From Zygnema circumcarinatum SAG 698-1b (lineage: Eukaryota; Plantae; Zygnematophyceae): DNA of 64,000 nucleotides. Below the pieces are notes generated by a model. It made no database searches. It had not been told where the DNA came from and was given only the letters and a program-made list of their open reading frames with translations. The stretch is taken from assembly GCA_037447605.1 (NCBI GenBank), contig CM074819.1, positions 310,001 to 374,000 of the forward strand, in the 5' to 3' direction. The position numbers and the translations under genes were made by a program. Of the stretch, positions 7,457-35,488 are shown one piece after another (within the stretch, counting starts at the first letter, position 1; every line of letters begins with the position of its first letter).

Positions 7457-10400
7457 TCACAGCCACGGATCGACGGGCAGCAGGAAAAGGTTCACCCGCT
7501 GGACCTCGCGGAAAATTCGATCTTCTTCTTGCAGCCACGGGCCGTTGAGCTGACTGTTTCTTGCGCGGATGTACTGCTGCTTGCCGGCGTACGTCCCCCC
7601 CAACGCCTTCGCTTCAAAGAATAGGCCTTCTGAAAACATGTGTGCGACCTGATAGCCCGCAAGCCACATGCGCATGGCCATGTCCCAGTCACAAAATATC
7701 CCGCTTTCTCCTTTCTTGCCCATTATCCCTTCATCTTGCCCGCCCAGCTCGAAGTAAACTCTCTTCCGGTAGATAGTCGGGGAAGAATCGACAACCGTTG
7801 CAAAGTGCATCCTTACATTCGTGACCGAGTCAAACAGCGGCATGTTGTCTCTGCGGTCTGACATTCTTCCAATCCACGCCATAAAAGGTCGGTTGTTGTC
7901 GACTGCGAAGCTCGACCCCCGCATCCCTATGAGGCCCACATTCGGCCATGCATGCAGCACGGATTGCAGCCGCGGCATCCACATGCAGCTGGCAGGAGGC
8001 TCTTCGTCGTCTTGGAGGAGAACCAAAAGGTCGCCCTTTGCAACTTGAGCGGCTCGATTATAGCCCCTCACTTCATTCACGTTGTGGGAAAACACAAGCA
8101 CAAGGAACTTTCCAGGCCTGGTCTCTTGCCAAAGCTTCTTCCACTTTGCCGCAGTTGAGGGCTCATCCACATTCACCACCAATTCCGTCGTAAGACCAGA
8201 GACGGACCCTTCGCCCAGCGAGCCACAAGTGCAGTCGTACAAACGTGTCACAATTTTTTCCATGAGGTCGGGCTGCCGAAAATACTGCAGCAACATGCTG
8301 ACTTTCACATTCTCGGGGTACCGGAAGGGGTCCCGCTTCCACACTCCCTGGGGTGCCATCCGTCCACCATCTCTTCGCCTATCGCTACACGTGGCAGTCA
8401 GCCAGCGTCTCTCACTACAACGGTTCCGCCATAGGAGGCTCGTGCCCTCGCCCTTCTCTGAGTCTCCATGTGCTTCCTCCGTTCCGTTCCTTTCGCTTCG
8501 CCGCAAAGCCTGCGGGCAGCGCGCGCCTGCACGCGGCGGCCGCAGCTTCAGGCAACTGGACGAAAAAAATACTACTTATGCACGGTCTGTTTGTGGTCCG
8601 CATAGCTCCACTATGAGAGAAAAATGAATGAGACTGCACCTTCCCAGAGTCTCCCTTGCAACAGATGTAGGCGTTTGGCCATTCGTTCGGGAAATCGCGC
8701 TTTCGCGGATGCATCCACAGCGGCCCGCCAGCCGCCACGTGCCGCTGGGCGGCCTGCTCCGAGGGGTCGAGTGTCATTACGAGCTGCCACGTGGCGTGTT
8801 TCTAGAAGTTCGCGACGACGCAGGTTGGCAGCCTGGTGGACCCATGTGAGACCGAATGGAGGGTCAAAAATCCGAATGATGTGTCTCAAACCTTCCTTGT
8901 GAAAGAAAAAGCTTCACGGTCGGATATCTTCAGTGAGAGCCGGTTGACACCATTCCCGGTTGATGTGTGAGGGCAAACTGCCTGAGGTCACCTGAACAGC
9001 AGCGGCTAAAGTCTCCTCCTGAGCCAAGGCTGCTGCTATGGCGCGTCTGAGAGCTGTCTCCAAAGGGCGAAACTCAAGCCTTCTTCTCAGCCTTAACGCC
9101 GGGTCCACTGACGGAGCCAAACGCTTTCCTGAATAGCCTCTGAAAAGAACGAAAGCAGCATGCTTTGCTAAGAAAGTTGGCAGGAACAATAAAGTTGTAC
9201 AACACTTAGGGGGAGAGCAAGAGAAGAGGGTGAGTGAGAGAGAAAGAGAGAGAGAGTGAGAAACAGAGACGGAGAGAGGAGCAGCGACGTAAGACTGAGG
9301 AAAGTGATTGATGCCAGTGTACTGTAACACTAACGACCTTATAAACGTTTGGAGCAATAGATGGTACAATCGGTTGAATTAACTTGTCTAGCGAAAAAAG
9401 GCCTAGACCTAAAAAATGGTTCTCAAGCAGAATACAAAATTTTATTATTAAGTTGTTTCTGATTAAATCTGTTATATGACATTTTTTTTTTTAAGACTGC
9501 TTTTTGAAATTTCCAAAAAATTGATGTGATGTAGGTTCCATTCGTTTTGGTGTTCCTGTCTGCTCAACCTTCGCGCACTTTGAGCGTGAAGACCACAAAC
9601 CGCTGAGCTTATGTTGCTGCCGCTTTGAAAACTAACTATACGAGAACGAACAAAGGATCAAAGGCGCGGTTGTTGGCCAATTTCACAGAATTGCCGCTGT
9701 CTGGCAAGGATGTCAATCTTGAACCGCGGAACACGGAGAAAAGAAATCTCGCCTTCGAATTCCGCCTGTTCGAAGATGTCAGCACATGCAGTTTTTCTCT
9801 GCAGTGTCAGGGCACACTCAGTGCAATCCAAGAGCAGACTGGAGCTCATTTTTTACCTAACGACGAAACTGCTGCAGGAATTCCATTGTCATTTCGATAC
9901 TCGCTCTCAAACTTCATCATACTTTCACACTCACACAGTTCCCACTCGCTTTCATTCTTACTAATACACTTATTCTCAGTAGGTTCACTGATTCTCAAGT
10001 TCACGTTCCGCTCGCACTCCCATTCTCAATTCCTCTCCTGCTCTCACTCCCCCATCTTTTCGTTCTGCCGAGTCATAGTGTCGAACTGGTTGACATTACA
10101 AAAGTCAGTTTTTTGCGACTCAAGCAGACCCCATCAGCGCTTGCGGTTATGTCAAAATTACATTTGTTGACACCTCATGTCCAATAATGAAGTAGAGATC
10201 AAAGTGCAAAATGCCCTCAGAGTTCGGAGTGGGCGGAGGTAAAAGCGAGTCGCTTAAAGGAAAGCAGAGCGGAGGAGTTTCCAGGCAGGTAGTCAAGCGA
10301 AGCGGCATTGCCTTGGCAAGAGCCCCACCTGAGCTGGCTCCAGAGCAGCCCTGCGACAAGCGCTCCGACAACGACGCCGGCGCAGAGCGCGGGGAGGTGC

Positions 10401-10504
10401 AGGCCCACCCTCGCCCTCACCCGCCCTGGCCCCGCCGCCCGGCGCAGGCCCGCGGCCCCGTCCGCGGCAGCGGCAGGAGAAGGGGCGGGGGCCATGGCCG
10501 CCAT
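7457..10504 (-). CDS. GT2-A: type II membrane GT2/GT-A family glycosyltransferase. Exons approx. 10504-10329, 9139-8992, 8832-8640, 8526-7457
   Basis: Exon 1 has a hydrophobic anchor (ALCAGVVVGALVAGLLW). The catalytic exon has VSMLLQYF, ELVVNVD, EVRGYNRAAQVAKGDLLVLLQDD (DxD-like), GGQDEG and DWDMAMRMWLAGYQV. Splice phases are compatible and shared with the paralog at 28684-32019. Confidence 0.8.
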
Positions 10505-10607
10505 CAGCGCGCTGCGGTGCGAGGGCGAGGGCGAGGGCAAGAGCCCGCCACCATGGCCGTGGCGGCCATGGCTTTGCCGCTGCCTGCCGCCTGGCAGTCC
10601 CGCCCGT

Positions 10608-10672
10608 GCTGTATCGTATTGTATCGTATCGAATTATATCGTATCGAACCGCGGCGAGTCGTATCGTATCGT
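10608..10672. repeat. (TATCG)n pentamer tract about 100 bp upstream of the GT2-A ATG
   Basis: gtatcgtattgtatcgtatcgaattatatcgtatcg...tcgtatcgtatcg read directly. Confidence 0.8.
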
Positions 10673-10682
10673 GAACGCTGCG

Positions 10683-12147: not shown

Positions 12148-15100
12148 TCATCTGCGCTCGCAGTCGCATTCCGTGCCGTGGTTCTCCACCAGCGCGACCT
12201 CGTCCCGCGGCCCGAGGTCGAAGCCGAGCGCGTCCTTGAGGCGGCGCAGGACGAGGGCCGCCCAACAGAGCACGTCCTGCTGCCTCATGCGCGTCAGGAA
12301 GTGCCGCCGCGCGCTCTCACTGATGGCCTTCAGCGCGCCCCTGTCCTTGAACACGTCCGCAATCTCCTGCACCAGGATACCAACCCTCCACGCAAGTCCT
12401 GGCCATCGCATACGCTCACACCTTAAAGCAACAACAAAGAAACCCACCACAATGAACTCCGTGATGCACCGCCCCCCTCGCTCACCTGTTCAAACTCCTC
12501 CGGAGCGACCTCCAGCTGCAGAAAGTCAGCCATGGGTCGCAGTGCCAGCTCATAGTACTCTCGCTTGTTGCGTTTTTGCGTCACCAGGACCGCCCCCGAA
12601 GCCACAACGTCCCATGGCTGCACGGTGCTGTCCTCCTCGCGGAGCATGACGAGTTTGTTCTGAAAAACGGAGCCGTCTTGGGCATCGAACACCAGTTTAT
12701 CCGTGCGCTCTTCCCAGGACGGCAAGCTCCCTAAGAGCTCCCAGTCCTTGCCTCCCAGAGAGGTGTTGATAGTGTGAAGGGAGGGGAAGGGAACGTCCTG
12801 AAAGTTGGCCTCCGTGACGGGCCCGAGGACAGGTGGCATAAAGGAGCCGGAGGGCGATATGGGGGAGTTATATGGGTGCCAGTAGAACTCAACATCCACC
12901 ATTTTCACTTTTCGCAAAAGCGATAAAATGAGAGTGTTGAAAGCTTCCCTTGCAGGGTCTCTGTCTTCTGGATTGCTACAGTACAGCTTGTTGGAGAGGA
13001 TAGTACAGCGAACCACCTGCTTATCACCCCACCAAGCAAATAACGAGGCTTGGCATCAACATAAAGTAAATGGTAACGAAACACATGACCGTCGTTTAGA
13101 CAGGAAACTCGTGAATCTGCGGTATACTGTAGTTTGCATGAACACCAACTATCCTGACTCAAAAGAAAACAAAAGGAAAACGTACAGATATAATTATTTG
13201 AAGGACCATGTGATCGGAGGATTTTACAGCTTTTTACATACATTCGGCAGATCTGGCGCACCGCGCCCTTGAAACATGTCCCAATTCACTCCTCGTGATC
13301 CCCAAAAAGAGAATAAATCCGATATCCTGTTTGCATCTGCGGACGGACGACCACACATCTCGCCCGTAAGAAGGCCACAACGAGACTCATCTCCCATACT
13401 GCATGAAGGATATAGGAACATCAATAATGGGACCTGGGACAATATTACATCGCCCTTTGATGACCATCCTTAATGCAGACATTCACTCCTATTGCTTATT
13501 TGGAAGGCTCATGACAGTGCTCGATCATTGAGAGCCGGTGGGAAAGACTCTGAATCTATTGTCAATCTCTTCCAGGCATTTCTTCCCTCCCAAATGCGCC
13601 AAAAGGAAAAAAAAAAAAAAAAAAAACCCGTACATCTCTCCCGGGAACCTCCTTCATACAAAAACAGATACAGCCGTGATTTTCTGAGTTTTCACGGCCG
13701 CTGCATTCCAGGATAAGCCCGTGTTTAAATCTGTGGATTGAATCACCTTCAGCTGAACACTGGTATTGTTGGAGAAACTGCTCAAACTCCAACGGGCAGT
13801 CGCATTCATCAGGAAGAACATATGCCTCCATAAGTACTTCATCGCGGTTGTCAGCATTCACCACCCTGCACACTCAAAACCAACAACCCGACATTGTCTA
13901 GAACGAGTGAACTTGAGACATCCGAACTTTTCCCAACAGCAGTTCACGTGGAACAAACACAGGGCGTCTGTCTATATGTCAAATTATTGGGGCACATACT
14001 GACGAAGTGCAAAGAAGTCAAGCAGATCGTACTTCCTTGAAGACTCGCACAGTCCCGCCTTTCCCCCACCTGTACTGACCCGCCTCCGTGGGACGGTACG
14101 AGTAGAGCTGGAAGCCCTCGAGTGCGCCGAGTGGCCGCAGCGCCACGTCAGCGGCCGCGCCCACCATGACCGGGGTTGGCGCACCACCGGGCGCGCAGAG
14201 GACCCTGGAAGGCAGGGGCAGACTGTGCCTGCTCGCCGCCTTGCCTCTGCCCTCTCCTGCATAAACGACCGGGCAACGCGGCTCACCCCTTTGCCAAGAA
14301 CAAACACACATCTAGGACTGCTCTGCAACATGTTTAATACTCATGCACCCTAACACTTTTGCACCAAGGCTGCCTATTTTACAGACTACTAAAACGTCTC
14401 TACCTCTTTCAGCATTCTTCCGCTCCCCGTCAGACTTGTAGCTGGATGACTTCATGAAACATTCAGAGGCTTGAATGGAATGTTGCACGGGACAACGAGG
14501 ACAGAAGCCCCTCTGGAGCACTTCTAGCCCACCGAGAGGAAAAACAGTTTTATGTTTCCTATGTTTCCTTAGTATTCCCAGGTCGCAGCAGTTTTAACGG
14601 GCTTGCGTCCATGTTTCTGAGTCTGGACGTTTACCAATTCGTATGATTTCGATCGCACTGCAAAGCGCCGTGCCAGCAGAAGCATGAAAGTCGACAACAA
14701 TGGCGTGCTCTTCCGTTTCCTTCACTTGGATGTCAAAGCCGGGAATCTCGAAGCGCCGGTCTGGTCCCACTGCTGCCGCCACGTCGACGTCCTTCGCTGC
14801 AATCTCCCCTTGCACTAGGACAGTGAAGACTCGCTTTCCAGTGTCCTTCCAATGGGGTTCATACGTATGTACGTGAACTCGATAATCGCCCGGCCGTATG
14901 GGGAAATTATAGCCAAAATCTGCCCCAACTCTGCCTGATTTACAAAGGGGCTCCTGTAACTTCGTCTGCACTGTTTCAGATTTCCCAGATTTCTCCACGT
15001 TAAGGAAGGAATCCTCTGGATAGAAGACTTTGGAGACAAGCTCGCCATTTTCACAGCTAATAAGTGCATCCTCGAGACCCTCCCCGCACAACATGTAATA

Positions 15101-16145
15101 CGATGTGGGCAGACCGTCTGCACAGGGCACAACTCACGAACAATGCTTCGTGAGGGAGAGCTACATCGACGAAACGCACCCAGAAAGTTAAGCTTCTCTC
15201 CCTGTTTTGTTATTCCAAGGTTCTTCTGAAAACTCGGCGTGCATGCTTTAAAAACTGAGAACCAACGAAACAATTCTGCGTTTTTGGAAATCAACCAGAG
15301 AACAAAAGAGGTTAAGGAATGGAGAAATGCCTGTTCCTACACAGGCCAAGGCAAGCCCTTGAGGCACTACAGGAAAACAAGAGACAGACAAATGACGGAG
15401 GTCGAACGGCAGTGTTGAACAGGGGGGAGGGATGTTAAGCGTTCGGTATCTCGTCTGCACGAAAAGCAAATAATCTCCCTCGGAAAGCACAATCTCTGAA
15501 TGCATTATTCTGCCTCGTGAGTTTCCTTCACTGTTCATCGATGGAAATAGCACGCTTCGGCACCAACGTAGTCACGGATATTTGGTAATGCCGCTCAGCC
15601 TAATCTCTCCTTGTGTGAAAATCCTGAGGGAAGGAAAATAGACTCTGTACTCCTTCAATCGGCCATCTATTGCTGGTTCCCCAGCCAGCGCCGATGCATG
15701 CGCGCGCTGTGAATAACCATCCCCCCATGCCCGCCATGCTCTGTATGGAACGCGTTAAGCAAACGGTTCAGGGTTGAGAAGCTTCACCGAAAGGTTGTGT
15801 GGTTGGGGTGGAACTCTGCGCAGAGTCGGGTGCAGGCCCCTCCTGCGCCAGCCCTTCCTGCGACGGCCCTGCATCCACGCCCGCAGCGAAGGCATCTCCC
15901 ACCGGTTCCGGGCCTTCAGAGAGGCGGCTGAACCCTCCCAGCAGCACGCTCGCGGTGCTCGTGACGTACGCAGCGCGGACGACGAGGTACACGAGGCAGA
16001 ACAGCACGAACGCTTTCCGGACGAGGCTCGCGTAGGCGGCAGAAGACTCGCGGTTCTCCACCTTGCCGGGCGGGGGCACGGGCACGGGCAGGGGCAGGAG
16101 CGGGCCATTTTCGCCGCGGGCGTCCTCGAGGTCCGCCATGGCCAT
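12148..16145 (-). CDS. Type II membrane protein: TM + malectin + short filamin/Ig-like segment + KDELC/POGLUT2-3-like GT90 (CAP10) domain. Exons approx. 16145-15788, 15117-14635, ~14260-14071, ~13865-13750, ~13326-13234, 13016-12486, 12366-12148
   Basis: TM: KAFVLFCLVYLVVRAAYV. Malectin: YNFPIRPGDYRVHVHTYEPHWKDTGKRVFTVLVQG...ALCSAIEI. Filamin-like: YSYRPTEAGQYR. KDELC-like: PDECDCPLEFEQFLQQYQC, ILSLLRKVKMVDVEF, FQDVPFP, SWEERTDK, EYYELALRP and a C-terminal helix. All junctions found are GT-AG and in phase. Confidence 0.8.
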
Positions 16146-16361
16146 GGCGAGGATAGGCGAGGCAGGCAGGGCCTGCCTTAGGGCCGATCCCAGCCCGTTC
16201 CATGCGCCGACCGCCGTGCGCCTCGACAGCACTGGCCGCGCTTCGCATGGAACCGTCCTATCACCTCTCCGTACAGGCCCCGGGGGCGTCCGTACGGCCG
16301 CAGTTAGGCCTCCCGCAGTCAACACTACGCGACAAGGCGCCGCCCGGCTCGCACTTGGCGG

Positions 16362-16530
16362 AAGGGAGAGGGAGGGGGGAGGGGAGAGGGAGTGAGAGAG
16401 GGAGAGGGAGAGGGAAGGGGAGGGGAAGGGGAAGAGGGAGAGGGAGAGGGAGAGGGAGAGGGAGAGGGAGAGGGAGAGGGAGAGGGAGAGGGAGAGGGAG
16501 AGGGAGGGGAGAGGGAGAGGGAGAGGGAGA
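16362..16530. repeat. (GAGAGG)n tract in the ~495 bp between divergently transcribed genes
   Basis: Direct reading, between ATG 16145 (-) and ATG 16641 (+). Confidence 0.85.
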
Positions 16531-16640
16531 GCTTGAGAGAGGAGGACGGCGCAGCGCGCCAGGGGAGGGAAGTGCGAGAGGGGGAGAGGGAGACTCGGCG
16601 GGAGGGAGGGAGGGGAGGGGAGAGGAACCAGCGCGGTCGG

Positions 16641-19600
16641 ATGGACGATGAGGGTGCCGGCCTGGTGGAGGCGGGGAGTGGTGGTACCGTTGAAGGTGGA
16701 GACAAGGTGGGGGAAAATATTGGAAGGCCTGGTTTGGCTTGGAGTGTGATGCCGGCATTGTTAGCGAGGTGACCCTGTGCATGCTTCGCCGTTTCTGCAG
16801 TTCTTGAACGCTCAACGGTAAAAAGGTTTTTTTTATGTGATTTGTGTGTCTCGATTTATTTTTCCCTTGCATCTTTCTGTGATTTGAGCCGACTGTAAAA
16901 TGTTGACCCCACGCAACCACTAAAGAACTCACTGAGCTGCATTACTTAAACATGGAAGCTACTGCCGTTCAGACTTGCACGCTCAAATTTATCCCCCACA
17001 AGCGTCCGTCTACTTGTGGTCTGCTTCCTGACCCGGCTTCCAACAGCTTTGTCGTCTATGAGCTTTGTATTTTGTGTATTTTAACGTTCTCCATAATCAA
17101 ATCACGTTGTATGTGGGTCAAGTTCGATGGCAGCTTATGCTCCAGCCCTTTGTCTATAAACCAATCTGGCTGGTTTGAACGCAAACTAAGCACTGAACTT
17201 GCCTGTCTCTGTAGAGAAAGGACCCTGTTTGGTCGAGTGCGGTCGAGCTCTTGGCTCATCCGGCAGTGGCGATAACTGCGGGCCTGCTCGTGCTTGTCCT
17301 GCTCGCCAACGACCTCTCCTCCGTGCTGCAGCGCCCTGCCCCCACGCAAGGCCCGGCCCCTTCACAAAGCCCGGAAGGTGTGACATTGGAGGCAGTAGAA
17401 GGCACGAAGCAGCCAGATACGCCACTGTTCACTGCTGAGGCGGAGCGCCTGTATCAGGTTCGATAAGCTAATCATTTGCAAGCTGAGCTCAAAGCGTAAT
17501 CGAATACTTCGTCCCAAATTCTTTTGCGTCTTTCGAATTGGCCTATCAAAGTTTCAGAAGAGCATCCTCGCGGTTATCCCTATCAATTTGACACTTGAGT
17601 AATCCATTTGGACTCATAGACTGAACAGTTTTTAGGCTTTTTGGTGATGCAGACATGGAGCGAAATGTATGCTCTTAATAGCAGCGAACCCCCTTCGGCC
17701 ATCACTCCGCGTGAAGGATGGCTCAGTGGACGCAATTTCCCGCCGGCTCCCCACCTGCTCAACTGCGAAGCGGTCAGCCGGCAGAGAATGGCGGCCTCCG
17801 AGCTCGGCCCCAACGGGGAGCCGCCGCCATGGCTCACCTCCAGGACCGACCTGCGCTCGCTGCAGCCCCCGTGGGTGCGCGTCAGAAGCCCGTGTAGACG
17901 AGAAGAACAATCGCTTTTCTGTTGCCTTGTTTGGGGCTTCTTCCAACACAATCCATTCAGTGAAGGCAATTGGGAAAAAGCACCTTCATAGTAGTCAAAC
18001 TTCTCTTGTCTTTCAAACCTGATTGAAAGGTATCCATCTGGATACACTTGAAGGCAAGGGCATGCGAGCACCGTTAGATTATTCTTCCTCCCCAGGGGGG
18101 GCGGATGCATGCAGGTGGCGGGAGGCGAGGCGGACAACACGGCGATGACGCGTCACGCGCAGGCGTACCTGTGGTCGCGGCAGTTCCCGGTGCAGTGCGG
18201 GGGGGCGGGGGCGCGGTTCGCGGTGGGCCGGCACCCCCCCCCGCAGCACCACGGCCTCGGGTCGACGCTGCACCTCGCCGCGGACGCGCTCACGCAGGCG
18301 CTCGCCGCGAACCGCCTCTATGTGCCCGCGCCGGGGACATTCAGCAGGGCGGATCACGACGCCTGCAAAGGTGNNNNNNNNNNGGGGAGGGGGGAGGGGG
18401 AAGGGGGAGGTCGCCGCCGCGCCTCACCATGCCTCTCTTTCGCAGTTCCATTTCCGTGCTAGGCTCTCATCTCCGCTAGACAGAGAGGACATGGGCTGGC
18501 CGTATTGGAAGGAAATCAGACATTGCAAACGATGGCTGAAAGGGAGCGTAGCTGACCTCTTTAGGGATTTCCTTCGTGTGTTTTCAATGCCTTGACTGTG
18601 AGCTCAGGAGACGATCGCGGCTCTCTTGACTGCTATTTTTTTCGATCGGTGTCGCCCCAATGTGCCGAACTCGCTTTTGAGATTCTGAAAACTCAGAAGG
18701 ACGAAGAACAATTTTGGAGCAGCCACATCAACGACAGGCTCAACTCTGAAACGCGTGTGATTGTGTTTGAAGGGGGCGCTGACTACGTGCCAAGAGCAGT
18801 CTGGTTTGATATCCCGTATGTTTCATTCTCACCTGTGCGTTTCCTTGAAAAAGGATCTGACAGGCATTGCATTTTGGTGCACACAATTCGGGAATGTTTG
18901 TCGTTCTGGGCTGGCTGATCTTGACACCATTCGAAACACTGGAAAATTAAAACGGTCAGAATCGCTCTATTTTTTTTGTGAATGTCAATGAACTTAAAGC
19001 TAGTTGGAATATGATAAGTTGAATATGGACATTGACTAAGTCCGGCGGGCGCACGCAGGGAGTTGGATCAGCCCTGGCTGCAGGACCCGCTCTATGTGGA
19101 GAACATGGGCCGCGTGCTGCACTACGCAGAGCAGCAGGAGTACGACGGCATATTTCCGAAAAACAATATTTCCTATTTCTACCTGAAAGTGAGTTTTTTT
19201 TTATGGTGCTGGTCTGCCCCTCCAGTTTTGTCCATGTGATGCCGGTTTCTTTTGTTCCCTCTTTCGTTTCTCTTTCTGATTCGTTAACTCGCCTATATCG
19301 TCTCCTCACTTTTCGTCTCCCATTTTCTCATCTTTACATCTCCCATCACATGTGCCTTACTCTTTCCATCTGGCTGCTTCCCCTGGCTCACCCCACACCT
19401 CTGTACTGTATACCGTTTGACCATGCTACGCATAAGCGATTTTTCAAATGACGTCTTTTGCATAACTGCAAAGAGCCAGTTGGGCATGACCAAGATAAGC
19501 CACTTGTCGACTACGACGCCCAAAGTTCCATTTCACGTTCAAGGACCAGACGCATAAACATTTGTCAAAACTGGTCTTTCCCTGATCCTTGCCTGGTGCC

Positions 19601-20508
19601 GCGGAGTGGCTGTTTAACCATTGCCACTCTTCACTTCCTGTGCTTCTAAACCCCTTGTTCGCCTGCTTCGCCTGCTTCCTGTGAATTTCTTCACAGCTCT
19701 GGTGGTGGAAAGCGCAATCGACGAGTTTCCTCCTCCGGTGGCCCACCGCAAGGCTCTGCCACATAGTGAACCGCGTGCGCCATGACGTGTACGGCCTGGA
19801 GACCGCCCGCGGGGTGGTGCAGTCCGACGCAGACCTGCGCTTCGCCGCGGAGCGGTCCCGCGCGCGCGACGAGGGGGAGGCGGCGCTGCTCGCGGGGACC
19901 GCTCTGGGGGAGGAGGACACGCTCGAGGGCACCCTCTGGGCGGACGCGGAGGCGTACATTCCGCGGCCCATCACGAGCGTGCACGTGCGGCAGGGCGACA
20001 AGGGCGGGGAGATGCACCTCTTCTCGTTCGCCTCTCACATGTGGCTTGCGGCGCGACTCCGCCGTCACAATCCCAGTCTGCAAACGGTGTGGCTAAGCAC
20101 GGAAATGCAGGTACGGTATGCAGAATCTCGCCTCAGCATGTTTTGGAATGTCAGTTTACAATTATTGGTCATGGCAGTTAAAGGTCCTCAGCATTTGCGG
20201 ATGTAACTGTGCTTGAGCGCGCGCTGGGACAGGAGGTGATTGACGAGTCGGAGAAGTTTTCCAATTGGAAGTTTCTTTACACAAGAAACCACCGACAAAC
20301 AAGGGACTTGCCAATGTCGGCCTACGAGGCACAAATAGGTTCGGCTGTGTTGACCGGCCTTAGCTTTGCGAATCTCCTCATTGCCGTGGAATGCGATTAC
20401 TTCATTGGGCCGTTGGGCTCCAACTGGGGCCGATTAATTAGAGAACTCCGCGTCACCAAAGGAAGACTCAAATCAGGCATTCTCAGTGTCAATTTTGACG
20501 AGATGTAA
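16641..20508 (+). CDS. Plant-type alpha-(1,6)-fucosyltransferase-like protein (GT23-like). Exons approx. 16641-16706, 17215-17457, ~17683-17875, ~18116-18371, ~18608-18803, 19059-~19186, ~19698-20110, ~20233-20508
   Basis: TM: [15 protein letters not shown]. Motifs: [95 protein letters not shown]. An N gap at 18374-18383 falls in an intron. Confidence 0.88.
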
Positions 20509-21477
20509 AGTCGCCATTGTATATGAATTTCTCCCTTCCACTCCCATTCGCTAGGTCCGAATGCTGCAAAAGAGTCGCCTTACATCGCCTGGGCAAAGGG
20601 CGCCTGCCTGTCTGAACCGGCTTTGGGATCAAGGAGAGCCGACCGCTCAGCCAATGAACAAGGTGCGCGTGTGCTTGGAGCCACTGTTCTACTCTCCTCT
20701 CCCTTCTCCGTTCTCTTTTCCTCTCCTCGCCTCGTCTCTCTCCTGTCTGCTCTCCTCCCCCTCGCATTCGCCCCTCCATTCCCGTCTCTCTTCCTTCTCC
20801 CCAGCCCCCCCTCTCCCTCATCCCTTTGCCAGGTGCGCACAGCGAAAACTAAACGCGCCACCTACCCTATTACCCCTCTCCCCTCCCCATCCATTCCCCC
20901 ATCTCCTTCCTCATTCCCCCTTCCCGTTTCCCTTTCGTCCCCCTTCCCCCCTCCTCCCTTCCCCCCCCCTCCCCCTCCCCTACCCTCCAGGTGCTGACGC
21001 CTCCGCAGGCCCGCCTGTGCACTCAGAGTGCATAGCTTTTTAAGACCATGCGCAAGTGATTCGTAGCATTTTAATTTATTGACATAGGTACAAAAGTTTT
21101 GTTTTATCACACGACATTTTGTGTCGTTGCAATCCGCCATATTCTACACATTTTTTTGCAAACACAATAAAAATTTCTATCATGTCTTGCGGGCCTTCTT
21201 AAAAACAACCTAATGCCTCTGGGCTCTCATCGTTCGACGTACTCCACCCCGACCTGCTACCCGTGATCGAGCCTCAGACCGGACTGCGCAAGTCTTCAAA
21301 AGCCAGAGTCGTTCTCCGATTGAGAAGCCGGTCATCTACATTCATCCTTTTCCGCATGCCGAACTTGTCAATCTTCGCTGTTAACACGGCATACCTTTTG
21401 CAGCTCGACGTCGTCGCAAACTTGCCATGCCTTGCCTCTTCCCTCCCCTTGCGGATCATCAGGCTCCGGGGCCGTGT

Positions 21478-23973
21478 TCAGGCCCAGAGGGCCGCCCCGT
21501 TCTCCTCGGGGGGCTCGAGCGTGCAGGGCTCCTCTGCGGCCACCTGCACCCTCTCCCGAAAAAACTCGCCCTCCGCAGGAGAGCTGCTGAGCACCGACTC
21601 CATGGTGACCTCCATGGCGTCCGGCACGCGCTGCGGCTGAAACCGCTGGAGGGAGTGGTACTCGCGGAGGAGGTGCAGCATGTACATGTACACCACGTCC
21701 ATGCTCAGCTCCTCCTCCACAAATGCGCTTCCCGCTGAGCCAATCCTCCGGGCTTGCTCTGCATGCGCCTCTCCCCACTCCACCGCCTCCTGCGCGGCGG
21801 CCCGCCATCCCATACGTGAGTTGTATGACATGTCACAAACAACCACTTGACCATAAGCCGCACCACTGCAAAAGGGAAGGGGAAGGGAAACTGGCTGGAG
21901 CAGGGCATTAAACGGAGAAGCGCCATCCACTAGATGACCAGCGCAAAATTGGCCAATACCTGTGTGAAAGTTATCCTCCGCCCATACCAAAAAAAAAAAA
22001 AAAGATGGGATGGGGATACAAAATTGACACCAAACTACTGGACCTGAACTTGGCAGGACTTGCCTTGATAGTATCACAGATAGACCGCTCTTCTGACAGG
22101 GCTATGGGAAGATAATGCACGCCCTCTTCAAGGGCCCGAGAGTAGAAGTCCACGTAGGGCGACTCCACAAAGAGAACGGTTGATGCGCATGCAAGCACAT
22201 ATTTGAGGCTGCAGGACCATGACCTGCCTTCCACATAGATCTTATACCTGCACCCAATCCGGAGGAAAACCAGTTGTATGGCTTGGGTCGTGAAGGGCCA
22301 CAAGCGGTGCCGTCAAGGAACTGCTGCGCTGGCTAAGGGCTGTGCGCGAACCTGTGCGTGCACTGCGTTTGCAGGCGCGAGGCCGCCTCCTGCGTGGCCT
22401 GCCTCCACTCGATGTGCTCGGCATGCACGGGGGCGGAGCAGCCCTTCAGCGCCATCCTCAACTCCGACGTTTCAACGTTTCCTTTCCACTGCGCAAAAGG
22501 AAGACGTTCTTCCCACGGAACTGCAGCGGTTCCATTGCGGATCAATTGGCGCTGTTTGTCCCACTTGTAAATCAGAATTTCAGGCCTGCACGGCCATGCA
22601 TATAGAGAGACACGTTGGCTACGAGCAGCAGCAGAAGGATCATTGTACACACGACGACACGGAAAGGCAGGAGTGCACCTTTCTTGGAGAACAAAGAGAA
22701 GGTGCCAACAAATGTTCACCTACAGGAGCGGCACAATGATCTTCCTGAAGACATGCCCATAAGGCTCAACCTGGCGGGAACAGACCTTCAGACTCACCAG
22801 CCCCAAAAGGAAAAGTCCGGCCATAGCACCTCCAGGTTCGTGTTGGTGGTGCAGAACCTGAAGAGCAGCGGCGGATTCAAGTGAAAAGCGTACGAGCTGC
22901 GGCGGAACACCGGCATGTCCTCGCATTCAAGCATGAAGTCGACATCCGGCACCTTGCCCGGGTACCTGTCGCCCCACTCTCGATTGCCTTACAATGAGCC
23001 GAGCGAGGGAGGAGGGGCAAGGGAGCAGTAATGGGGAGAACAGAGCAACGAAAGGGGGCGAATGGTGGATTGAAGGACAATAGTTTTCAGAAGGGAAGTT
23101 GGCGATAAGCGTGGGGAAGGAAGTCAAGGAGCGCTACAAGCACATGACAGGAGACTTGAGACAGGAGACCCGTGTGGGCGTGTGGCTAAGAGCTAGAAGC
23201 CCACCTCTGCAAGAGTTGCAGTATCCCCCACAGTGTGAAAATGGACCTTGTCTGAAAGCATACCTGGATCAAGAACAGCACGCAAATGTTCAGCAAAGAA
23301 AAGGGCCTCAAGACGGGAATTCGCGACAAGGAAAAACGCAATCTCATAACGGAAACCAAAATTCATTCTTCTGTAGCAGTCTCCACTGACCCGCATTCAT
23401 AACTCATAAGCTTTGCGCTCAATTTTCATCCAAGCCTTCTTGACGTATGTTTCGACCTCAAAACGCACCCAGTACTCGTGGACGAACAAATTGCCCTTTA
23501 TGATCTGCACCCTCATTGCTGCGCGAGGCTGCGCGTTCGTCACAGCCTCAAGGCTTATGCCTCCTCTCGTCCTCCACGGCGCCAGATCCTTGTGGATGTT
23601 TCGAAAGTACTTTGGGCAAGTGCCGCTATCTCTGCTTCTGCTGGCAGGAGCCGAACCAGCGTGCTGATTGCTACCATTCTTGGACGGGCACAAGGCGAGC
23701 TGCACTGTTTGATAGGTCGGTGACGTGAGGTACAGCAAGGCACAAAAGGCCTGCCACAGGATACAACCCATTCGCCATCACCGAAAAGTCGAAGAAATAC
23801 ACAAATGCTCCTCTTGCTTTTGCGGGACCAATGGTAGGCATATCGATGCAGGACGGGCAAGAACCCACCAGCACAGTTAAGGACAGGCAGGGAGCCAGCA
23901 GGCCTAGTCTTCCTCCTGCGATGCCCATGGCCCTGAGCACCAGCGCCCTCTTGTGCGACCGCCCGCCATTCAT
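21478..23973 (-). CDS. Plant-type GT90 (DUF821, rumi-like O-glucosyltransferase homolog), multi-exon
   Basis: Motifs: TCPKYFRNIHKDLAPW, CFQTRSIFTLWGILQLL, YPGKVPDVDFMLECEDMP, WPDFSFWGWPE, PWEERLPFAQWKGN, YKIYVEGRSWSCSLKYVLAC, EEELSMDVVYMYMLHLLREY. N-terminal hydrophobic segment present. Confidence 0.92.
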
Positions 23974-24386
23974 CTGCGCACTCGCGCATGTCTAATGCAG
24001 CGCCCGGCCCGGCCCTGCACCCGCTCGCGTCCTCCCCCTCGCCTCTCCTCTCCTCTCCTCGCCTCCTCTCCGCACGCGTACCTCCTGCTGTGCTGCTGCT
24101 GCTGCTGCCACTGCGGGCCGAGCCGGGCCGGGCCGTGGTCAGCCGACTCACTGACGGCATCACGAGCCAAAAAGATACGCCGTGCGGCTAGCAACGCCCG
24201 GCGGCGGTACTTTGCGCCAGCTGGACCTGGGCGCTCACGGTACCTGCGACCGTGCGCGTCCACCGTCCGCTGACGGACGCGGGTGAGGACGCGGCGCGAT
24301 GACACGGCTAGGAGGGATCTACACTTGTCCGTACAATCGACTTAGAGTAGAGTTTTAGATTTCAGCATTAGAACGGGGTCGAAGGA

Positions 24387-25979: not shown

Positions 25980-28329
25980 TCAGTTTGAGCAGACAGGATT
26001 GGATCGCGGCACCACCACTGCCTCGCGCTGGATGCGCTCCTCCGCCCAGTTCTTCCCTGCAGGCGGCAGAAGTGCCCCGTCAGCCCACGCTCGCTGAAGG
26101 GGGACTAGCCCCCTGCTACAGTTAGCCTCTAATGACTGATTCGAGAAATGCACATAAAGAGAGGTCACAGCGCACACAACAACGTGATGTGAAGGTAAAC
26201 ATGACGAGAGTCATTATCACAGGCTTTCTGTCTCTCTCTTTCTTTCTCCCTCTCTTGCTCCCTCTACTACTCTTCCTCTGTGACCGATTCTCGTTCCCTG
26301 TCCTCCTCATTTTGCCTTTGGCCATCCTGCTTTTCGCAATTTTGCGCCCATTTCTGTCCACTCCCTCCCCACTCCACGGTTCTTTCTTCCAGTTTCCACT
26401 TTCTTTCATTGTCCCGTTCTATTTTTCAATCCTTCCGGCCCCAACATATAGCCCCTCCCATCTCTCTTCCGTTTCCCATTCCCTTTCTTTCCCCTCGTCA
26501 GCCTCTCCGGCCTCGTCCTGTCCATACCCCACCTCCGTCCCCCTCACACAGACTCCATTTCCTTCTCCCTAATCAATTTCAATCCATTCAAAACCCTCTC
26601 ATTGCCTTCCCCTCATCGATACACCTTCAACCTTCCTCTTCCCTCACCATCACTTTTTTTTGTCCTTGTCCTTCTCCTGCAGCCCTTCGACAAGATGCTT
26701 TCTTCGTTTCTCCATTCTAATATTTCTTTCCCTCTTCCCTCTTCCATCCATTCACCGTCCTTGTATTCTTTCCTTTTCTTGCTTTCTATTCAGTTCCCAT
26801 TCCCTCTTCCGTCCGTCCCTCCGTTTCCACCCACTAACTATTGCCCATTAAGTCTACCTTCCATCCCGCCCTTGTGCCACTGTCCACATTTCCTTCCATG
26901 TCTTCTCTATGCCATATGCAAAAGCCTTTTCCCTTTCCACTACTACCTTTCCTACCCCTCGTCCTTCAGGCTTCACCCTCTCCTGTCCAGCACTTTCTGT
27001 TCCATCTGTCATTCAAACATCATCAAAAGTTCAATCGTGTTGATTGCCACATACCGATTGGCAAGACTTGGATCGCATTGCAAAGACCATTGTCTCGTGA
27101 CCCTCTAAATTCAATTTCGAGTCGGGAGCCCTCGTTCACATCTGCTATCGCTGTTGGATATGTATACATAGTGTCTTTTCCAACAAGCTGTGCTAAATCG
27201 AGGTTCTCTAAAATTTTCCTTCCTTGCACTGAAACGTCGAACATCCTTTCTCCCGGTAAGAACCACGACTCGTGTCCGTACACTCTGACCAGGTACCTGC
27301 CGGGCCGGATCGGCAGACGGTACCCCCACAACGGGCCGCTTCTCTCTTGTCTGCAGAAGGGCCCGCAGTCGGTCTCAAAATCGTAGTAGTTAGAGTTGCC
27401 GAACAAAATCGATGGACCAAATGCGCGATCCCGCTGGTACGTGACCTCCACCGGCTTCTTTCCTTTGCACTCCAGCTCGGTAATGTCCGCAAGTCCTCCA
27501 CACAGCAGGCGATATGACGACGGTAACGCCGAGTCTGCGTGCCACGATGCGTGGAGCAGCATCGAATGAGAGCCCAAACCATAAAATCCTCCAAAGTGCA
27601 GGCCTTCAAATCCAGAACTCCTGTCTTCAAGCTCTCTTAATCAGCCCTCTGTTCTCCACGCTCCCATGCACTAAGCGAGCAGTGCTCATGGGGTCGACTG
27701 GTTGCCTCGATCTACATGAGCCTCACCCCATCTCGTTCATGTTCCATGGCCCTGGCTATGGTGGCAAATAAGAAAAAGCCGCTCGCAAAAAAACATATTC
27801 CCACGTACGCATCACTTTGCGATGGAAACTTTTTGAAAGGTAAGAGATCAATTATTTAGAAATCTCAAAGTCTTACTACATTAGTCTTGGACGTACAAAT
27901 TTTGAGGTTTTTTAGCTCTATCCACCTATCTGTATAATCACTCTCTGTTTTGAGAGAGACTATACAAGAAACCAGAAACCAGAACCATACATCAATGCAG
28001 CACCCATTCCAGCAAAGACAGCATCGATTCCGATATTGAAAATCCCAAACTACTTTCCCACTTACGCAATTCAGAGGCTCTCCAGAGGTTTCTGTGGGCG
28101 CTAGAGATGTGGGCCCCGCCCCGCCCCACGCCCGCACCTACCTACCTCGGCCGTCGTCGGGCGCGAACGCGGGCACGCGCACGGCCTCGCGCAGCAGCCG
28201 CAGCGCGAGGTACGCCAGACACGTGCCCGCCACCGCCAGCCGCACCGCGCCCCCGAGGCCCCCCCCCGGCTCCTCCGCGCGCTTCGCCCCGCCACCGCCG
28301 CTCTCCGCCACCGCCATCGCCATCGCCAT
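25980..28329 (-). CDS. Type II membrane malectin-only protein. Exons approx. 28329-28146, 27534-27055, 26056-25980
   Basis: TM: VRLAVAGTCLAYLALRLL. Malectin exon: WGYRLPIRPGRYLVRVYGHESWFLPGERMFDVSVQGRKILENLDL...GLCNAIQV. Phase-1 junctions; the 25-aa tail ends in TGA. Confidence 0.78.
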
Positions 28330-28683: not shown

Positions 28684-31600
28684 ATGGCAACCTCCGCGGA
28701 GGAGCGGGCGCGGGCGGGGGCGGGGGAAGGAGGGCGCGGGCCCGTGTGGGCCGCTGCGGGGGGCGTGGCCGTGGGCGTGCTCTGCGCGCTCCTCCTGCAC
28801 AGCCTCGCCTCGCCGCCGCCCCCACGTGCGAACAGCGTCCCAGAGGCCGTGGCGGCCATGGACGAACTGCGGCAGGAGGTTTGGCGTGCGCTCAGGCTCG
28901 CCCGAAAGGAGGAGGCTGTTCTGACCCGCGCGTTGCAGGTGCGCTCGCTCTCAACCTCTGTGGCTTGAGCGTGCGTTTCTCGGGCACGTTAAGTTCTGCA
29001 TGCAGCTGTTTCTCGCCCGTGCTCGGGTGTGAGCGTGGAGGAGGTCATAGGACACAGCAAGCAACAGCCTTTGCGGCATGCGCTGAGTGTCCTTCGCGTT
29101 GGCGTCGTTCGGCGGCGGTTCGTCGTTCGGCATCTCGGTCCGCTCATGAGGGCATGGGGGTTATGAAGCATATTTTTCGGTCAGGTCGAATGACGTCTGA
29201 GCTCGTCACGGGTTCACGATTATTGAGGTCACCCACTTGAGAAGTAAGGCGGAGCAGCATTGCATCCGTTGGATACGCGGATCACTACAGTAATTCCTGT
29301 TGCAGGAATCGTGGAAACCGGTCGAGCAGGTCTCACTGGCTATGTTGGACTAAAATTTGAGGAAAGCAGGGACTTGCTTACAAGGAAACATATCAGTCAA
29401 CCCACGATGCGCAGGTTGGGCAGTAAACTCCGAGCGCCAAAATTCAGGGGTCTTGTTTGTTGGGCATGCTAAATGACGCGTGCATGCGTGAAAAACAAGT
29501 GCATTCAGCGAGAACAGAATTCCGGCAGCCTTGTCTCGGGCCACAATGCTGCAGATTCGATTCTTTCCCAGTCTTGACCTGCCTGACATCGCGGCACCCA
29601 AGATGGGCTGCAGGCTGCTTCGCGCGGGCGGCGACAAGTGGCAGACGCGCGGCTCGTGTCGCGGGAGGCGGTCGGCCCTGGAGGGGCGGCGAGCTGGCAG
29701 GACGCGGTGGCGCGCGCAGCCGCGGGGCAGCAGAAGGAGCGAATCGCGCGCTGCCAGACGCTGCGCATGCGATGCGCCACTCTCGAGGCCATGCATTGGA
29801 AAGGTATGGCTGTTCAGCATGTAGAAAATGAGAGGACATGTCTGCGTTTCACGAAATAATGCTGTAGAGGCAGAATGAGTATCAGAAAAATGGACTATAC
29901 GATGGGCCCATTGAAAATCACTGTCATTGTCTGTGATTTAAACCGGTACTCCGAATTAAGCTTCTGTCCGTTTATCTAAAGTTAAGGAACCAGATGATTT
30001 CTTGTTTCTTGTCACAAGGGCCTATACTTGTAGGCATGGATTTAGCCAAGGAAATGCTTTGGTGACTTGCCCCTTCACTCAGAAGCACTTCCGTAAACAC
30101 CATAAGTATGTCCATGATCACAAGATTGTTCTCTAGCTTGCACACTGTCTCGAAGGTGGTTGGTCAAGGTTTCGTCTTGTTTATGTTTCGTCGTGCTCAC
30201 CCCTGTTCACAGCAAGTCATACGCGAGTGTAAGAACTAGAGTTACAGGAGGGAGCAGGTGCTGAGAGGCATGACCGGGCATGGCCCTGTTTGTGACCTGA
30301 GTCGCGGGAAGGAGGGGTGCATGAAGGCCAGCCCGGCTGCGGGCGAGGCCTCGGGGGGAGGCCCCACTCGCTGCCGGCCCTGCGGGCCGTTCCTGCCACA
30401 CGCCCTCACCAGGTGGGCGGGCCTCTCTAAAGCTAATTCAAAAATTGGGACGATGACTTCATTTTAAATGTCAGTCTTAAAGATATGATTTCAGCATTTG
30501 CCAGACGCTTGGCCAATGGTTGGCTGTGGTACTGGCTTCGCAACTGGCTATTGGTACTGGTTCAGTTATTTAACTGTGTTTGAAGTGAAACTAACTGACT
30601 CTTGTTCGTGCTCAAATCCGAGGGGCTTGTACATCATGCGTTCTCACCATTACTTCGACAGTCCTTGGTCATTTGGAGGGTCGAACTACGCTGCATGATT
30701 ACATCTGTTTTTGCAAAACCGCGTATCATATGAACAAAGCAAGCCAGAGCAATTTTTTTTTTGTACTCGCTTGCTGCGGATTGACAATGTCCTTTCCTGG
30801 AATACCTGCAGACTCTCAAGATGACTCTCAATACGATTGGAGCATCCATGAGACTAAAGTAGAAAGCTGGAGTGATGATTTTGTCCGCGTCCTTGAGCCT
30901 TTGGAGAGGCCAAGCTGCAATTGGACGCATGACGAGGCCCTCCTCGCTCGGTCCGTCCTCGCCTGCACGAAGAGTCTCTGGACCACCTGCCGGATTGAGG
31001 TGCGCCCCTACGGAGTCGCCCTCGGGAGGGAGTGCCGCTACCTCCTCAAGCAGCAGCCGAAGGGGCGCGCGCGGAGGGACCCGGGGCTGCTGGCACACCC
31101 CCGCGTGTGGAAGCGCCACCTGGACCACTACCGCGACAGCGCCACGCTCAGCCTCCTCGTGCAGTACTTCCGCCAGCCCGACTTGGCGCCCCACATTGTG
31201 CGCCGACTGTACGACTGCACCAAGGGCAGCCTCGCTCGGGGCCAGGTGGTGGGTGTAACCACGGAAATGCTGGTGCATGTAGACGAGCCTTCCGCTGCTG
31301 CCATGTGGCATCAGCTCTGGAAGGAGACCAGGGAGGGAAACTTTCTTACTCTGGTGTTCTCCCATAATCTTGGAGAGGTGAGGGGGTATAATCGCCTCGC
31401 ACAGATTGCGAGAGGAGGCATCATAATGCTTCTGCAAGACGATGAAGAGCCGCCGGAGACGTGCGCGACGTGGCTCCCACGGGCACTCACTATGTTCGAT
31501 GCATGGCCCAAACTCGGAGTGATCGGTATGAGGTACTCCAATCTTCATGGAGGGAGTGATGGGTCTACAACTCTACACGGGTCAGTCTACTACTACAAGC

Positions 31601-32019
31601 ATCCCACCTGGCCAGAACAGATGTCGCTGTATGACACTCACACCAATGTTCGTATGCTCTTTGCGACGTATGTGGACTCGTCGCCCATGCTATACAGGCG
31701 GTGGCTGTATTGGGACTTGGGCGGGCAGGATGAGGGGGCTATGGGTGGAAAGGCCGACAGTGGAATTTTTACAGATTGGGATATGGCCCTTAGAGTATGG
31801 CTGGCGGGGTACTTCGTGGCGCATCCGGCGATGAACGAGACGGACCTGTTCAGGAATCCGCCGGGGGTGGAGGGCACCACGCACAGGGTCGGGCGGGGAG
31901 GCTTCACGCGCCGCGTCGGCTCGTGGCTCAACGACCGCTTTCGGATCGAGCTGGCGAGGGTGTTCGAAGAGGTCAAGCGAGCGAACGGATTCTTACGGGG
32001 CATTGACCCGTGGCAGTAA
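28684..32019 (+). CDS. GT2-B: paralog of GT2-A. Exons approx. 28684-28938, 29614-29803, (possible extra small exons 29.9-30.6 kb), 30812-32019
   Basis: TM: VWAAAGGVAVGVLCALLL. Catalytic exon: LSLLVQYFRQPDL, EVRGYNRLAQIARGGIIMLLQDDEEPP, GGQDEG, DWDMALRVWLAGY. The stem exon WQDAVARAAA..ERIAR matches WRAAVDASA..ERMAK in GT2-A. Confidence 0.85.
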
Positions 32020-33170: not shown

Positions 33171-33328
33171 CTTGAAATACCTGCCTGGAACATGAAGAAA
33201 TTGATTCATTCAAGGACTGAATGCGAAACAAAAGTTGGACACAGCACAAAGCCCACCCATGTGCTCGAGGTGCTCGACAGCCTCCCTCGCAGCAGCAGCA
33301 GCAGCGGCGGGCGGGCGGGCGGGCGGAG

Positions 33329-35488
33329 ATGGAGGGGATGCGGCCGCCTGCGGGCGCGGGCAAGGGCCGGCCCACGGCGGAGGGCGAGGGCGCGGTCAGA
33401 GATCGCCGCCATGGCGCCGCGCGCCTCGCTGTGGTCGCCTCCCTCCTCGCCGTCTACGTCGCCTTTACTGTCCTGGATTTTGAGAGCCAAGGACATATGG
33501 AGCCGAATGTTCGCCATCTTGAATCGCGACTATGGGACAGGTATTTGCATTGGGCACCTCACCACCTGTCTGTAGAAAGTTATGCGAGGAAGAAATCACG
33601 TGCTTCTCTTGCCTGTTTGTCAAAAAATGGGGGGAGGATGAACTATTTCGCTTCTGCTATATGAGTCATGGAAATTCTTTTTGTAAAACTTTGTAGGTCC
33701 CCTGACTGTCCCTCGCGACTATGCCAATTAATTTTTACTAATGATTAATTATTTTTAATCTGTGATCTTTGGTGGTTTTTCGGCTAAGGGAAGCCTGTAG
33801 ACAATGGTCTCAGTTGGGATGAAACTGAACGGTTGGTGCGGCAGACCCATTGAGGATCGACCAAATTTGTTCTACTTTAGAGGCAACCTCGGGTTCCGCT
33901 ATTTCCATGGGAGGCCAGAGGAGAGGTAGGAGGAATGCGAGTGTTTTCAAACCTCTCATTTTTAATTCTTGCCTCTCTATTTTAATCCTAACTGACGGCA
34001 GACCTCGCAAATCCTTATCCTTCAGTTGTGGCTAGACATTTAGGCTGGACCCTCTGCCTTACTTTGTTGCCTCTGCTCCTGTGTTTGGACTTCTTTCATA
34101 AGGCGGAATTTGAATGAAGCCTTCGATTTCTGCTGGTCGGCAGGTACAGCATGGGCACTCGGCAGAAGGTGGTGAGGCTGTTTGGCTCCTCCCCTGACTG
34201 ACGTGGACAACAAGCTTGGCGACCTCCACGAAGAGGGCGTGATTGTGACAAGCGGCCAACATGGGGACTACCGCAAAGGAGTACACCCTTGACTCGACCG
34301 CGCCTACTTCTTTGCCATGCCGTATGAACCTAAATCCTATTGGCCTGACCGGACCTTGTAGCGCCTTATCACAGTACACAGTGCTCTTAAGACGGCGCTG
34401 CGGTGGGGAGGGGGGGGGGACAGCTGTCCCAGTCGCGCTTTTGTTGGGTGTTTCCTGGCGACGGGTTTAGCGCGCGCATGGAAGACAGCGTCCTGCACGG
34501 CTGCATCCCTGTCATCATTCAGAATGGAATCCAACTGTCGTATGAGAATGTTCGTGACTACAGGGACGTCTCCGTTCGTGTCGCTGAGGATGATATTCCC
34601 AACATGGTGAACTTCCTTAAGGTTTGTCAATCACCAGCTGCTCATCTCTTGTGTCCAGTCCAGATTACATTGCTCTCCCACCACTCTTCACGTTAATTGA
34701 AATTAGATAGTCGATTTTTGTTGTAGTTTTTTGCCCTTGTGGACTGGTCTATTCTGGGCTTAAAGACTGCTTAATTTCATAACTCTGACCGGTATCATGG
34801 CTAATGGTGTTGCAGGCCATTCCTGAAGAGCAAGTGCGTAGAATGCAGGCCACAATACAAGGCCTCTGGCAGCGGGTGGACGCACACCTCAGTCCTGCGG
34901 GCGGATGCGCAGAGGCAGCGGCAGTGGCACGGCCTCAGCGCCGACTGGCGTCCCGCCACGTCAGCGCCTGCCACATCAGCACCTGCCACATCAGCACCTG
35001 CCACGTCAGCGCCTGCCGCGGAGACGATGCCATCGCCACGCTCCTTGAGGTGCTCCTCCACACAGGGGAAGAGGGGGGGGGGGGTTTACCCGAAACTGTC
35101 AGCGAGCAGTGCGTGGGTCCTGTTGTAACTGTACACTATGTCAGCCAGCCTGCAACAATACTTCCCAGTGGCGTCTGCGGTTCTTTTTGTGCCAAACAGC
35201 GCAAGCGATGCGACTGCAGTTCTGCTCAACGGTTGTTGGTCGTCTGCCAAGCGTTTAGCAAAAGCGTCGTACAGCGTGCCATGCTTCGTTGTGTCATTGG
35301 TGGGGGGGGGGGCGGCCGGCGGCCTTTGCGAGGCTTGCAGAGGGCTCATCCGGGCTTTGGGAGGGTCTCAGATTCTGCATCACAAGCTGCACAACGACCC
35401 GCGGAGGCGGGACGCGGTGTTCGCTCGCAGAAGTGCAGCGGAGTATGGAGTGCCTGAGAAGTGCTTGCAGGCCAGCCAGAAGGGCTGA
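33329..35488 (+). pseudogene. Exostosin/GT47 gene (At3g57630-like), N-terminally truncated and frameshifted
   Basis: TM first exon, then RPNLFYFRGNLG, YSMGTRQK, FCWVFPGDGFSARMEDSVLHGCIPVIIQ, VAEDDIPN and ILHHKLHNDP. A TGAC duplication at 34195-34202 creates a stop. Further apparent frame changes near 34880-35020. The first half of the GT47 domain is not found. Confidence 0.75.

Follow-up and report, generated by a model that had tools for sequence, protein, structure and literature searches.

A 28-kb run of glycan-related genes from sequence-unrelated families in the nuclear genome of Zygnema circumcarinatum

In plants and their algal relatives, the genes for Golgi glycan synthesis are normally scattered, so that the partners of an enzyme have to be guessed from coexpression. 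In a stretch of nuclear DNA from Zygnema circumcarinatum SAG 698-1b (assembly GCA_037447605.1, contig CM074819.1, positions 310,001 to 374,000; here, the window, 64,000 nucleotides [nt] in full), all seven genes that can be recognized over 28 kb, from an EXO70 gene to a kinase gene, are glycan-related. An earlier note on this DNA took the run for a candidate biosynthetic gene cluster. The question is whether these genes act together in one pathway, act in smaller units, or are neighbors without functional meaning. Physically linked unrelated transferases and lectins would supply a ready hypothesis on cooperating enzymes, and a linked set would give handles on the plant-type GT90 proteins, on a GT2-like clade of about 490 representatives, and on a fucosyltransferase (FucT)-like family.

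Our analysis shows that the physical cluster is real and unusual. The explanation that we favor as a whole, with a probability of roughly 0.55, is that the run is a transcribed 28-kb neighborhood of type II secretory-pathway glycan genes, in which the gene pair is the likeliest working unit.

Extent and content of the run

Pfam, structure, and language-model searches recovered, in this order, a GT2-like gene (GT2-A, minus strand), a malectin-GT90 gene (GT90a, minus), a FucT-like gene (plus), a second GT90 gene (GT90b, minus), a malectin-only gene (minus), a second GT2-like gene (GT2-B, plus), and a GT47 remnant (plus). The places, strands, and order that the earlier note gave for these seven features were all correct. 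Its statement that no unrelated gene was recognized within the run was likewise borne out as far as domains are recognizable: about 20 further open reading frames (ORFs), located in the intervals that separate the genes or within the spans of the genes, contain no Pfam domain, and neither tRNA genes nor Rfam families were found in the spaces. When a biosynthetic cluster is defined by at least three adjacent nonhomologous genes, the 28 kb contain such genes, namely, GT2-like GT-A genes, GT90 genes with or without malectin, a FucT-like gene, and a GT47 fragment.

The window is eukaryotic nuclear DNA; spliceosomal introns are present, and the G+C content of the run (50 to 60%) is like that of its flanks. 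A giant-virus or phage origin of this glycosyltransferase (GT)-rich stretch was rejected on account of these introns, the flank-like G+C content, and the lack of any relative of the GT2-like domain in IMG/VR.

Transcripts support four of the seven genes (FucT-like, GT90b, GT2-B, and the GT47 remnant); all four were found in contigs of runs that belong to one set of four studies. For the 6 kb from 18000 to 24000, the part of the window on which such contigs were mapped, contigs of four runs from the same organism (X1, X2, X6, and X7) were used; they are spliced and thus derive from RNA. Three further RNA runs from 2017 that carry the same species label (X8 to X10) contain none of the sampled words of two genes expressed here; another strain or a wrong species label may be the reason.

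Gene models and family assignments

GT90b (21478 to 23973, minus) is a complete canonical GT90 (CAP10-domain) type II gene that encodes 447 amino acids (aa) in seven coding exons. Its six introns are documented by six joints in RNA contigs of four runs, and the last of them (21790 to 22063) has a GC..AG splice pair in the contigs of all four. The full domain is present: PF05686 profile positions 3 to 375 are matched over five exon pieces at 37.8 to 79.1 bits each (cut-off, 24). In the spliced ORF, an in-frame stop is followed by a Met at 23973 and then by a membrane anchor. The transcript contigs end near 24.0 to 24.1 kb and do not join to the malectin-only gene. Because GT90b has its own start and its contigs stop there, the malectin-only gene is a separate unit, and the possibility that its exon forms the 5' part of GT90b, which would make a second malectin-GT90 fusion, was rejected.

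In the malectin-only gene (27023 to 28329, minus), a malectin exon (27026 to 27640) runs into a stop codon and matches PF11721 (37.0 bits; E = 4.2e-9); the predicted first exon, read from the ORF, has a Met at 28329 and an anchor. A word-based homologue search with the malectin exon returned nothing. The other malectin copy belongs to GT90a (12148 to 16145, minus), where the malectin exon (14597 to 15133) reaches 48.4 bits (E = 1.4e-12); both copies thus lie above the Pfam threshold of 23 for malectin (CBM57), and the two exons are 33% identical. The GT90 part of GT90a (12426 to 13055) is more divergent, with a PF05686 score below the cut-off of 24 (18.5 bits; E = 1e-3) and a weak match to the POGLUT2 structure 9w47 (E = 0.004). 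The architecture of GT90a is that of a type II protein with malectin, a linker, and a divergent (POGLUT2/KDELC-like) GT90 domain; the Met at 16145 and the anchor were read from the ORF, and the exon joins are predicted. In the literature, we found no paper that links malectin and GT90 in one protein. GT90a and GT90b show no pairwise similarity, which is why recent duplication of one from the other was rejected.

The FucT-like gene (about 17215 to 20508, plus) has RNA-backed exons at 18115 to 18370, 18608 to 18815, 19059 to 19188, 19697 to 20110, and 20233 to 20505, with a stop codon at 20506; starting at 18115, the frame is open over 427 aa. The joints 18370/18608, 18815/19059, 19188/19697, and 20110/20233 and a loose end at 18114 (17874/18115) occur in all four runs, and all are GT..AG. 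Upstream of these exons lies one at 17653 to 17874, likewise in phase, of which the 3' end (17874) is RNA-backed and the 5' end (17653) is predicted. A further predicted exon (17215 to 17457), in phase and joined by splice reading only, contains a strong hydrophobic segment that would serve as membrane anchor. In one RNA contig, 669 letters precede 18114, and the two placed exons leave 204 of them unexplained. It is therefore suggested that a first exon with the start codon lies in the spacer of about 1.07 kb toward GT90a (16146 to 17214, with a GA/CT low-complexity tract), less than about 0.9 kb from the GT90a ATG.

An assembly gap (an N run at 18374 to 18383) lies within the FucT-like gene. 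It falls inside the third mapped intron (18371 to 18607), at intron positions +4 to +13 and 3 nt past the GT donor; the joint across this intron is the one present in the contigs of X1, X2, X6, and X7, the frame is open across it, and a conserved Cys-rich stretch follows directly. Thus, the gap is harmless to the gene, both sides belong to one transcript, and a break in a coding exon was rejected.

The language-model neighbors of the FucT-like gene carry O-FucT, FUT8_N_cat, NodZ, or GT11 domains, and the gene contains an H-V-R-x-G-D-K motif, which we take to be of the FucT type. None of its exons matches Pfam, and PDB sequence searches gave no match, whether one exon or a profile built from three sequences served as the query. 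As for CAZy family GT23 (FUT8-type), there is no sequence match to FUT8, NodZ, or PF19745. Judged by its language-model neighbors, the gene is best placed in the fucosyltransferase superfamily, and "GT23" is a superfamily-level call rather than a family membership. At its 3' side, contigs run unspliced over 20233 to 21789, from the last FucT-like exon (plus) into the last GT90b exon (minus), which indicates that the 3' ends of these convergent genes overlap or abut; with overlapping 3' untranslated regions, antisense interplay is possible. Two convergent FucT-like genes, 50 to 65% identical to that of the window, also occur on an environmental metagenome scaffold (L084, 1603 to 7100; 12-kb contig) with nothing else recognizable. 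Thus, this family duplicates locally elsewhere too.

The GT2-like genes each have their catalytic domain in one large exon. For GT2-A (7457 to 10504, minus), this is the ORF 7460 to 8575 with the stop codon at 7457 to 7459; it scores 19.9 bits against PF00535 (E = 7.7e-4), and tblastn with 30 family members recovered the region 7463 to 8488. A first exon with a Met at 10504 and a membrane anchor is predicted (ORF reading only). For GT2-B (28684 to 32019, plus), the catalytic exon is the ORF 30595 to 32016 (PF00535, 16.7 bits; E = 7e-3), which is present in full in contigs of seven runs of the same organism, judged to be RNA from the splicing seen. Here the predicted first exon has a Met at 28684 and an anchor, and a further probable exon lies near 29.6 to 29.8 kb. 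The N terminus of a relative, P0001, matches 29695 to 29805 (E = 0.003), and N termini of relatives give weak collinear matches at 28.8 to 28.9 and 29.6 to 29.8 kb, which suggests that the 2 kb ahead of the large exon are part of GT2-B. GT2-A and GT2-B are 52% identical.

Neither protein reaches the PF00535 gathering threshold (23.3 bits), and every Pfam GT2 threshold is missed. Some family members do pass GT2-type models (P0067, 33.1 bits; P0013, 27.7 bits with PF13632). A library that keeps a single sequence for each 50%-identity cluster contains 489 representatives of the family at E ≤ 1e-3, including a Mesotaenium protein. A PDB sequence search with GT2-B gave no match, and IMG/VR holds no relatives of the domain. 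An AlphaFold model of GT2-B (mean confidence [pLDDT], 86) has a GT-A fold, with TM scores of 0.5 to 0.57 to GT27 and GT2 structures (E = 1e-9 to 1e-8); the GT27 matches are ppGalNAc-transferases, and those from GT2 are SpsA, TarS, and hyaluronan synthase. A Q-D-D sequence (an acidic DxD-type motif) is nearly invariant in 40 family members and present in both GT2-A and GT2-B. For both genes, "GT2-like GT-A" is the defensible name on the basis of the modeled structure, as a fold-level call rather than GT2 family membership. One relative, P0036 (1594 aa), has a predicted C-terminal protein kinase domain in the same protein; this could be a genuine fusion or result from the merging of two gene models.

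The seventh gene had been called a remnant, rightly so. Of the 293 profile positions of PF03016, only 224 to 291 are matched, at 34391 to 34693 on the plus strand (71.5 bits; E = 9.6e-20). The gene (33329 to about 35000, its end being approximate) comprises an anchor exon (Met at 33329), short motif exons at 33801 to 33926 and 34176 to 34289, and this C-terminal exon with the last ~70 profile positions. The anchor exon and the C-terminal exon are ~830 bp apart, too little space for the N-terminal half of the domain, and the ORFs of this interval contain none of the N-terminal ~170 to 220 profile positions, so that a complete exostosin domain is not present. The GT47 gene is thus truncated, with its N-terminal half missing, and the six other genes look intact. 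Of the words sampled from 33300 to 35100, 60 to 67% are present in the contigs of seven runs belonging to those four studies, which indicates that the remnant is transcribed.

Taken together, the family labels of the earlier note stood in part: GT90b and the malectins lie above Pfam thresholds, while "GT2" and "GT23" hold at the fold or superfamily level and the GT90 part of GT90a is subthreshold. An N-terminal anchor had been claimed for every gene. Each of the seven indeed has a readable hydrophobic segment in a putative first or early exon, but RNA contigs back that of GT90b alone, and type II topology is predicted for the other six.

Origin of the run and its likely working unit

An all-against-all comparison of the ORFs of the window identified the GT2-like genes and the malectin exons as the only paralogues within the run. 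Both pairs are old local duplicates, so that the seven features reduce to about four independent founders. The earlier argument that tandem duplication cannot by itself account for the run holds: sequence-unrelated families are indeed mixed here, and two of the families (52 and 33% identity) are present as duplicates. GT23, GT47, and GT90 all have GT-B-type folds; "nonhomologous" holds at the level of the sequence family, which is the level relevant for excluding recent duplication. For four independent glycan loci in a row, we calculate an expectation of 0.002 to 0.16 occurrences per genome if 2 to 5% of loci are glycan-related, an assumed figure that was not measured for this genome.

Two pairs of nonhomologous members lie head to head. 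The predicted ATGs of the malectin-only gene (28329, minus) and GT2-B (28684, plus) are separated by 354 bp, and GT90a (16145, minus) faces the FucT-like gene (plus), with start codons less than 0.9 kb apart if the predicted 5' exon of the latter is placed correctly. Head-to-head gene pairs in plants tend to be coregulated (PMC4997330, PMC5045660). The layout of these two pairs thus favors pairwise coregulation.

Conserved linkage, one of the checks proposed for a functional cluster, was not found. Distant GT2-like relatives were examined in their surroundings at 83 loci (772 kb), none of which holds a malectin, GT90, FucT-like, or GT47 relative; the contexts of P0016, P0003, and P0020 contain none, L001 and L003 hold unrelated genes, and L084 to L088 contain none, with the FucT-like gene on L084 facing the second FucT-like copy and not a GT90 gene. 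This is a weak negative, as the search covered distant relatives and mostly metagenome loci. Eight long GT2-like relatives contain no GT90, GT47, FucT, or malectin domain. We found no publication that describes, for streptophyte algae, a Golgi GT cluster of mixed families, and the preprint on the Zygnema genome (PMC9915684) says nothing about gene clusters.

In the explanation that we favor, the run would have been built by old local duplication of the GT2-like GT-A genes and of malectin modules and by the juxtaposition of sequence-unrelated genes, namely, a malectin-fused POGLUT-like GT90, a canonical GT90, a fucosyltransferase-superfamily gene, and a GT47 piece. The working unit would be the gene pair rather than the whole run, with GT90a/FucT-like and malectin-only/GT2-B on putative short shared promoter regions and with FucT-like and GT90b probably converging with overlapping 3' ends. 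The products would most likely reside in the lumen of the endoplasmic reticulum (ER) or Golgi apparatus and act on secreted glycoproteins or on wall or mucilage glycans. The malectin (CBM57) module is probably a lectin that unites enzyme and glycan acceptor, by analogy with the lectin domain of ppGalNAc-transferases.

Several points weigh against this explanation. The chance estimate rests on an assumed GT density, and the real background may be higher. In a crude comparison of the five putative promoter regions, no shared k-mer exceeded what is expected at random. The gene models for GT2-A, GT90a, the malectin-only gene, GT2-B, and GT47 are ORF readings, and unannotated transcripts may exist at 10.6 to 12.1, 24.1 to 27.0, and 32.0 to 33.3 kb.

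Two other explanations read the same observations differently. According to one of them, which is the earlier proposal of a single-pathway cluster, all or most of the seven genes would be coregulated and act in sequence on one wall, mucilage, or glycoprotein glycan, with the malectins as acceptor-binding or scaffold partners. In its favor are the run itself, in which at least four glycan families unrelated in sequence follow one another without interruption and which is improbable under random gene order, the two head-to-head pairs of nonhomologous members, the presence of members in transcript contigs of the same four studies, and the EXO70 gene just upstream; fungi provide a precedent in a five-gene polysaccharide cluster (see below). 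However, the linkage is conserved neither at the 83 loci nor on L001, L003, or the 12-kb FucT-like contig, the GT2-like domain is never fused to the other families in the multidomain relatives checked, the promoters have no common k-mer, and one member, GT47, is truncated. We therefore consider this explanation doubtful. Its strongest form, in which the run is a true coregulated ER/Golgi glycan cluster, the first in the plant lineage to combine several glycosyltransferase families, making one lineage-specific glycan with malectin/CBM57 targeting the enzymes to their acceptor, and in which it exemplifies a general tendency of this genome to cluster glycan genes, seems improbable to us. Examples of what such a cluster might produce are an O-glycan attached to the cysteine-rich domains of secreted proteins (made by the POGLUT-like GT90, the FucT-like protein, and a GT-A enzyme) and a mucilage polymer.

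The other explanation holds that local duplication, rearrangement, and chance brought together genes with independent functions and regulation, so that the neighborhood has no selective meaning. It would account for the same absence of synteny and of shared promoter words, for two families being old local duplicates, and for a truncated member, as expected where genes are born and die. Yet, after the duplicates are collapsed, four unrelated glycan families are still adjacent, an arrangement for which even generous assumptions give an expectation below about 0.2 per genome, and two pairs lie on putative short divergent promoter regions. A purely neutral neighborhood thus appears unlikely.

Outside the run, the EXO70 flank (plus) is marked by Exo70_C domain matches in pieces at 998 to 2530 and 5648 to 5950; in or beside the first piece, long Glu/Gly/Arg-rich low-complexity ORFs are open in several frames (998 to 2994). 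On the other side, the flanking kinase (domain match at 36.5 to 38.6 kb, plus) is one of two paralogous kinase genes (35640 to 38632 and 47938 to 50091, both plus) that lie about 12 kb apart and have exon pieces 47 to 67% identical; no ectodomain was recognized in the pieces scanned. An inverted repeat of 326 nt (40107 to 40432 and 41755 to 42080; 96% complementary, arms 1.3 kb apart) could mark transposon ends. A perfect (100%) palindrome with arms of about 600 nt (43877 to 45089), centered exactly on an N gap (44479 to 44488), is most likely a fold-back assembly artifact rather than biology. The block from 54000 to 58500 is AT-rich (37 to 42% G+C), with dense internal repeats, unlike the rest of the window.

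Comparison with known systems

The fungal precedent is the five-gene galactosaminogalactan (GAG) cluster of Aspergillus and Metarhizium (PMC8224951). Like the run in Zygnema, it is a eukaryotic chromosomal cluster of nonhomologous genes tied to glycan synthesis or modification. In contrast to the Zygnema run, the GAG cluster is coregulated, conserved across fungi, and genetically proven for one polymer, with genes for an epimerase, a hydrolase, and a deacetylase among its members; the run described here consists of transferase-type and lectin genes only, has no conservation that we could find, and contains one truncated member.

Within the plant lineage, metabolic gene clusters likewise consist of adjacent nonhomologous genes and arose partly via local duplication. 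They differ in that they encode cytosolic or ER enzymes of small-molecule metabolism and are defined by coexpression and pathway evidence, whereas the run described here is known from sequence and layout and would encode type II lumenal glycosyltransferases and lectins. The cereal CslF cluster is a tandem glycosyltransferase array of a single family. It resembles the Zygnema locus in the local expansion of GT genes, as seen here in the GT2-like and malectin pairs, but at this locus at least four sequence-unrelated families are interleaved. With the bidirectional gene pairs of plants (PMC4997330, PMC5045660), the run shares start codons on opposite strands at short distances (354 bp and less than 0.9 kb), although promoter sharing and coexpression are predictions in the present case.

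At the protein level, a parallel is found in the ppGalNAc-transferases, in which a GT27 domain is joined to a ricin-type CBM13 lectin (2ffu, 6nqt). The lectin fold, the position of the lectin (N-terminal in Zygnema), and the catalytic family all differ. By analogy, this union of a carbohydrate-binding module with a transferase is a plausible model both for the fusion of malectin (CBM57) to GT90 and for the free malectin encoded beside GT2-B.

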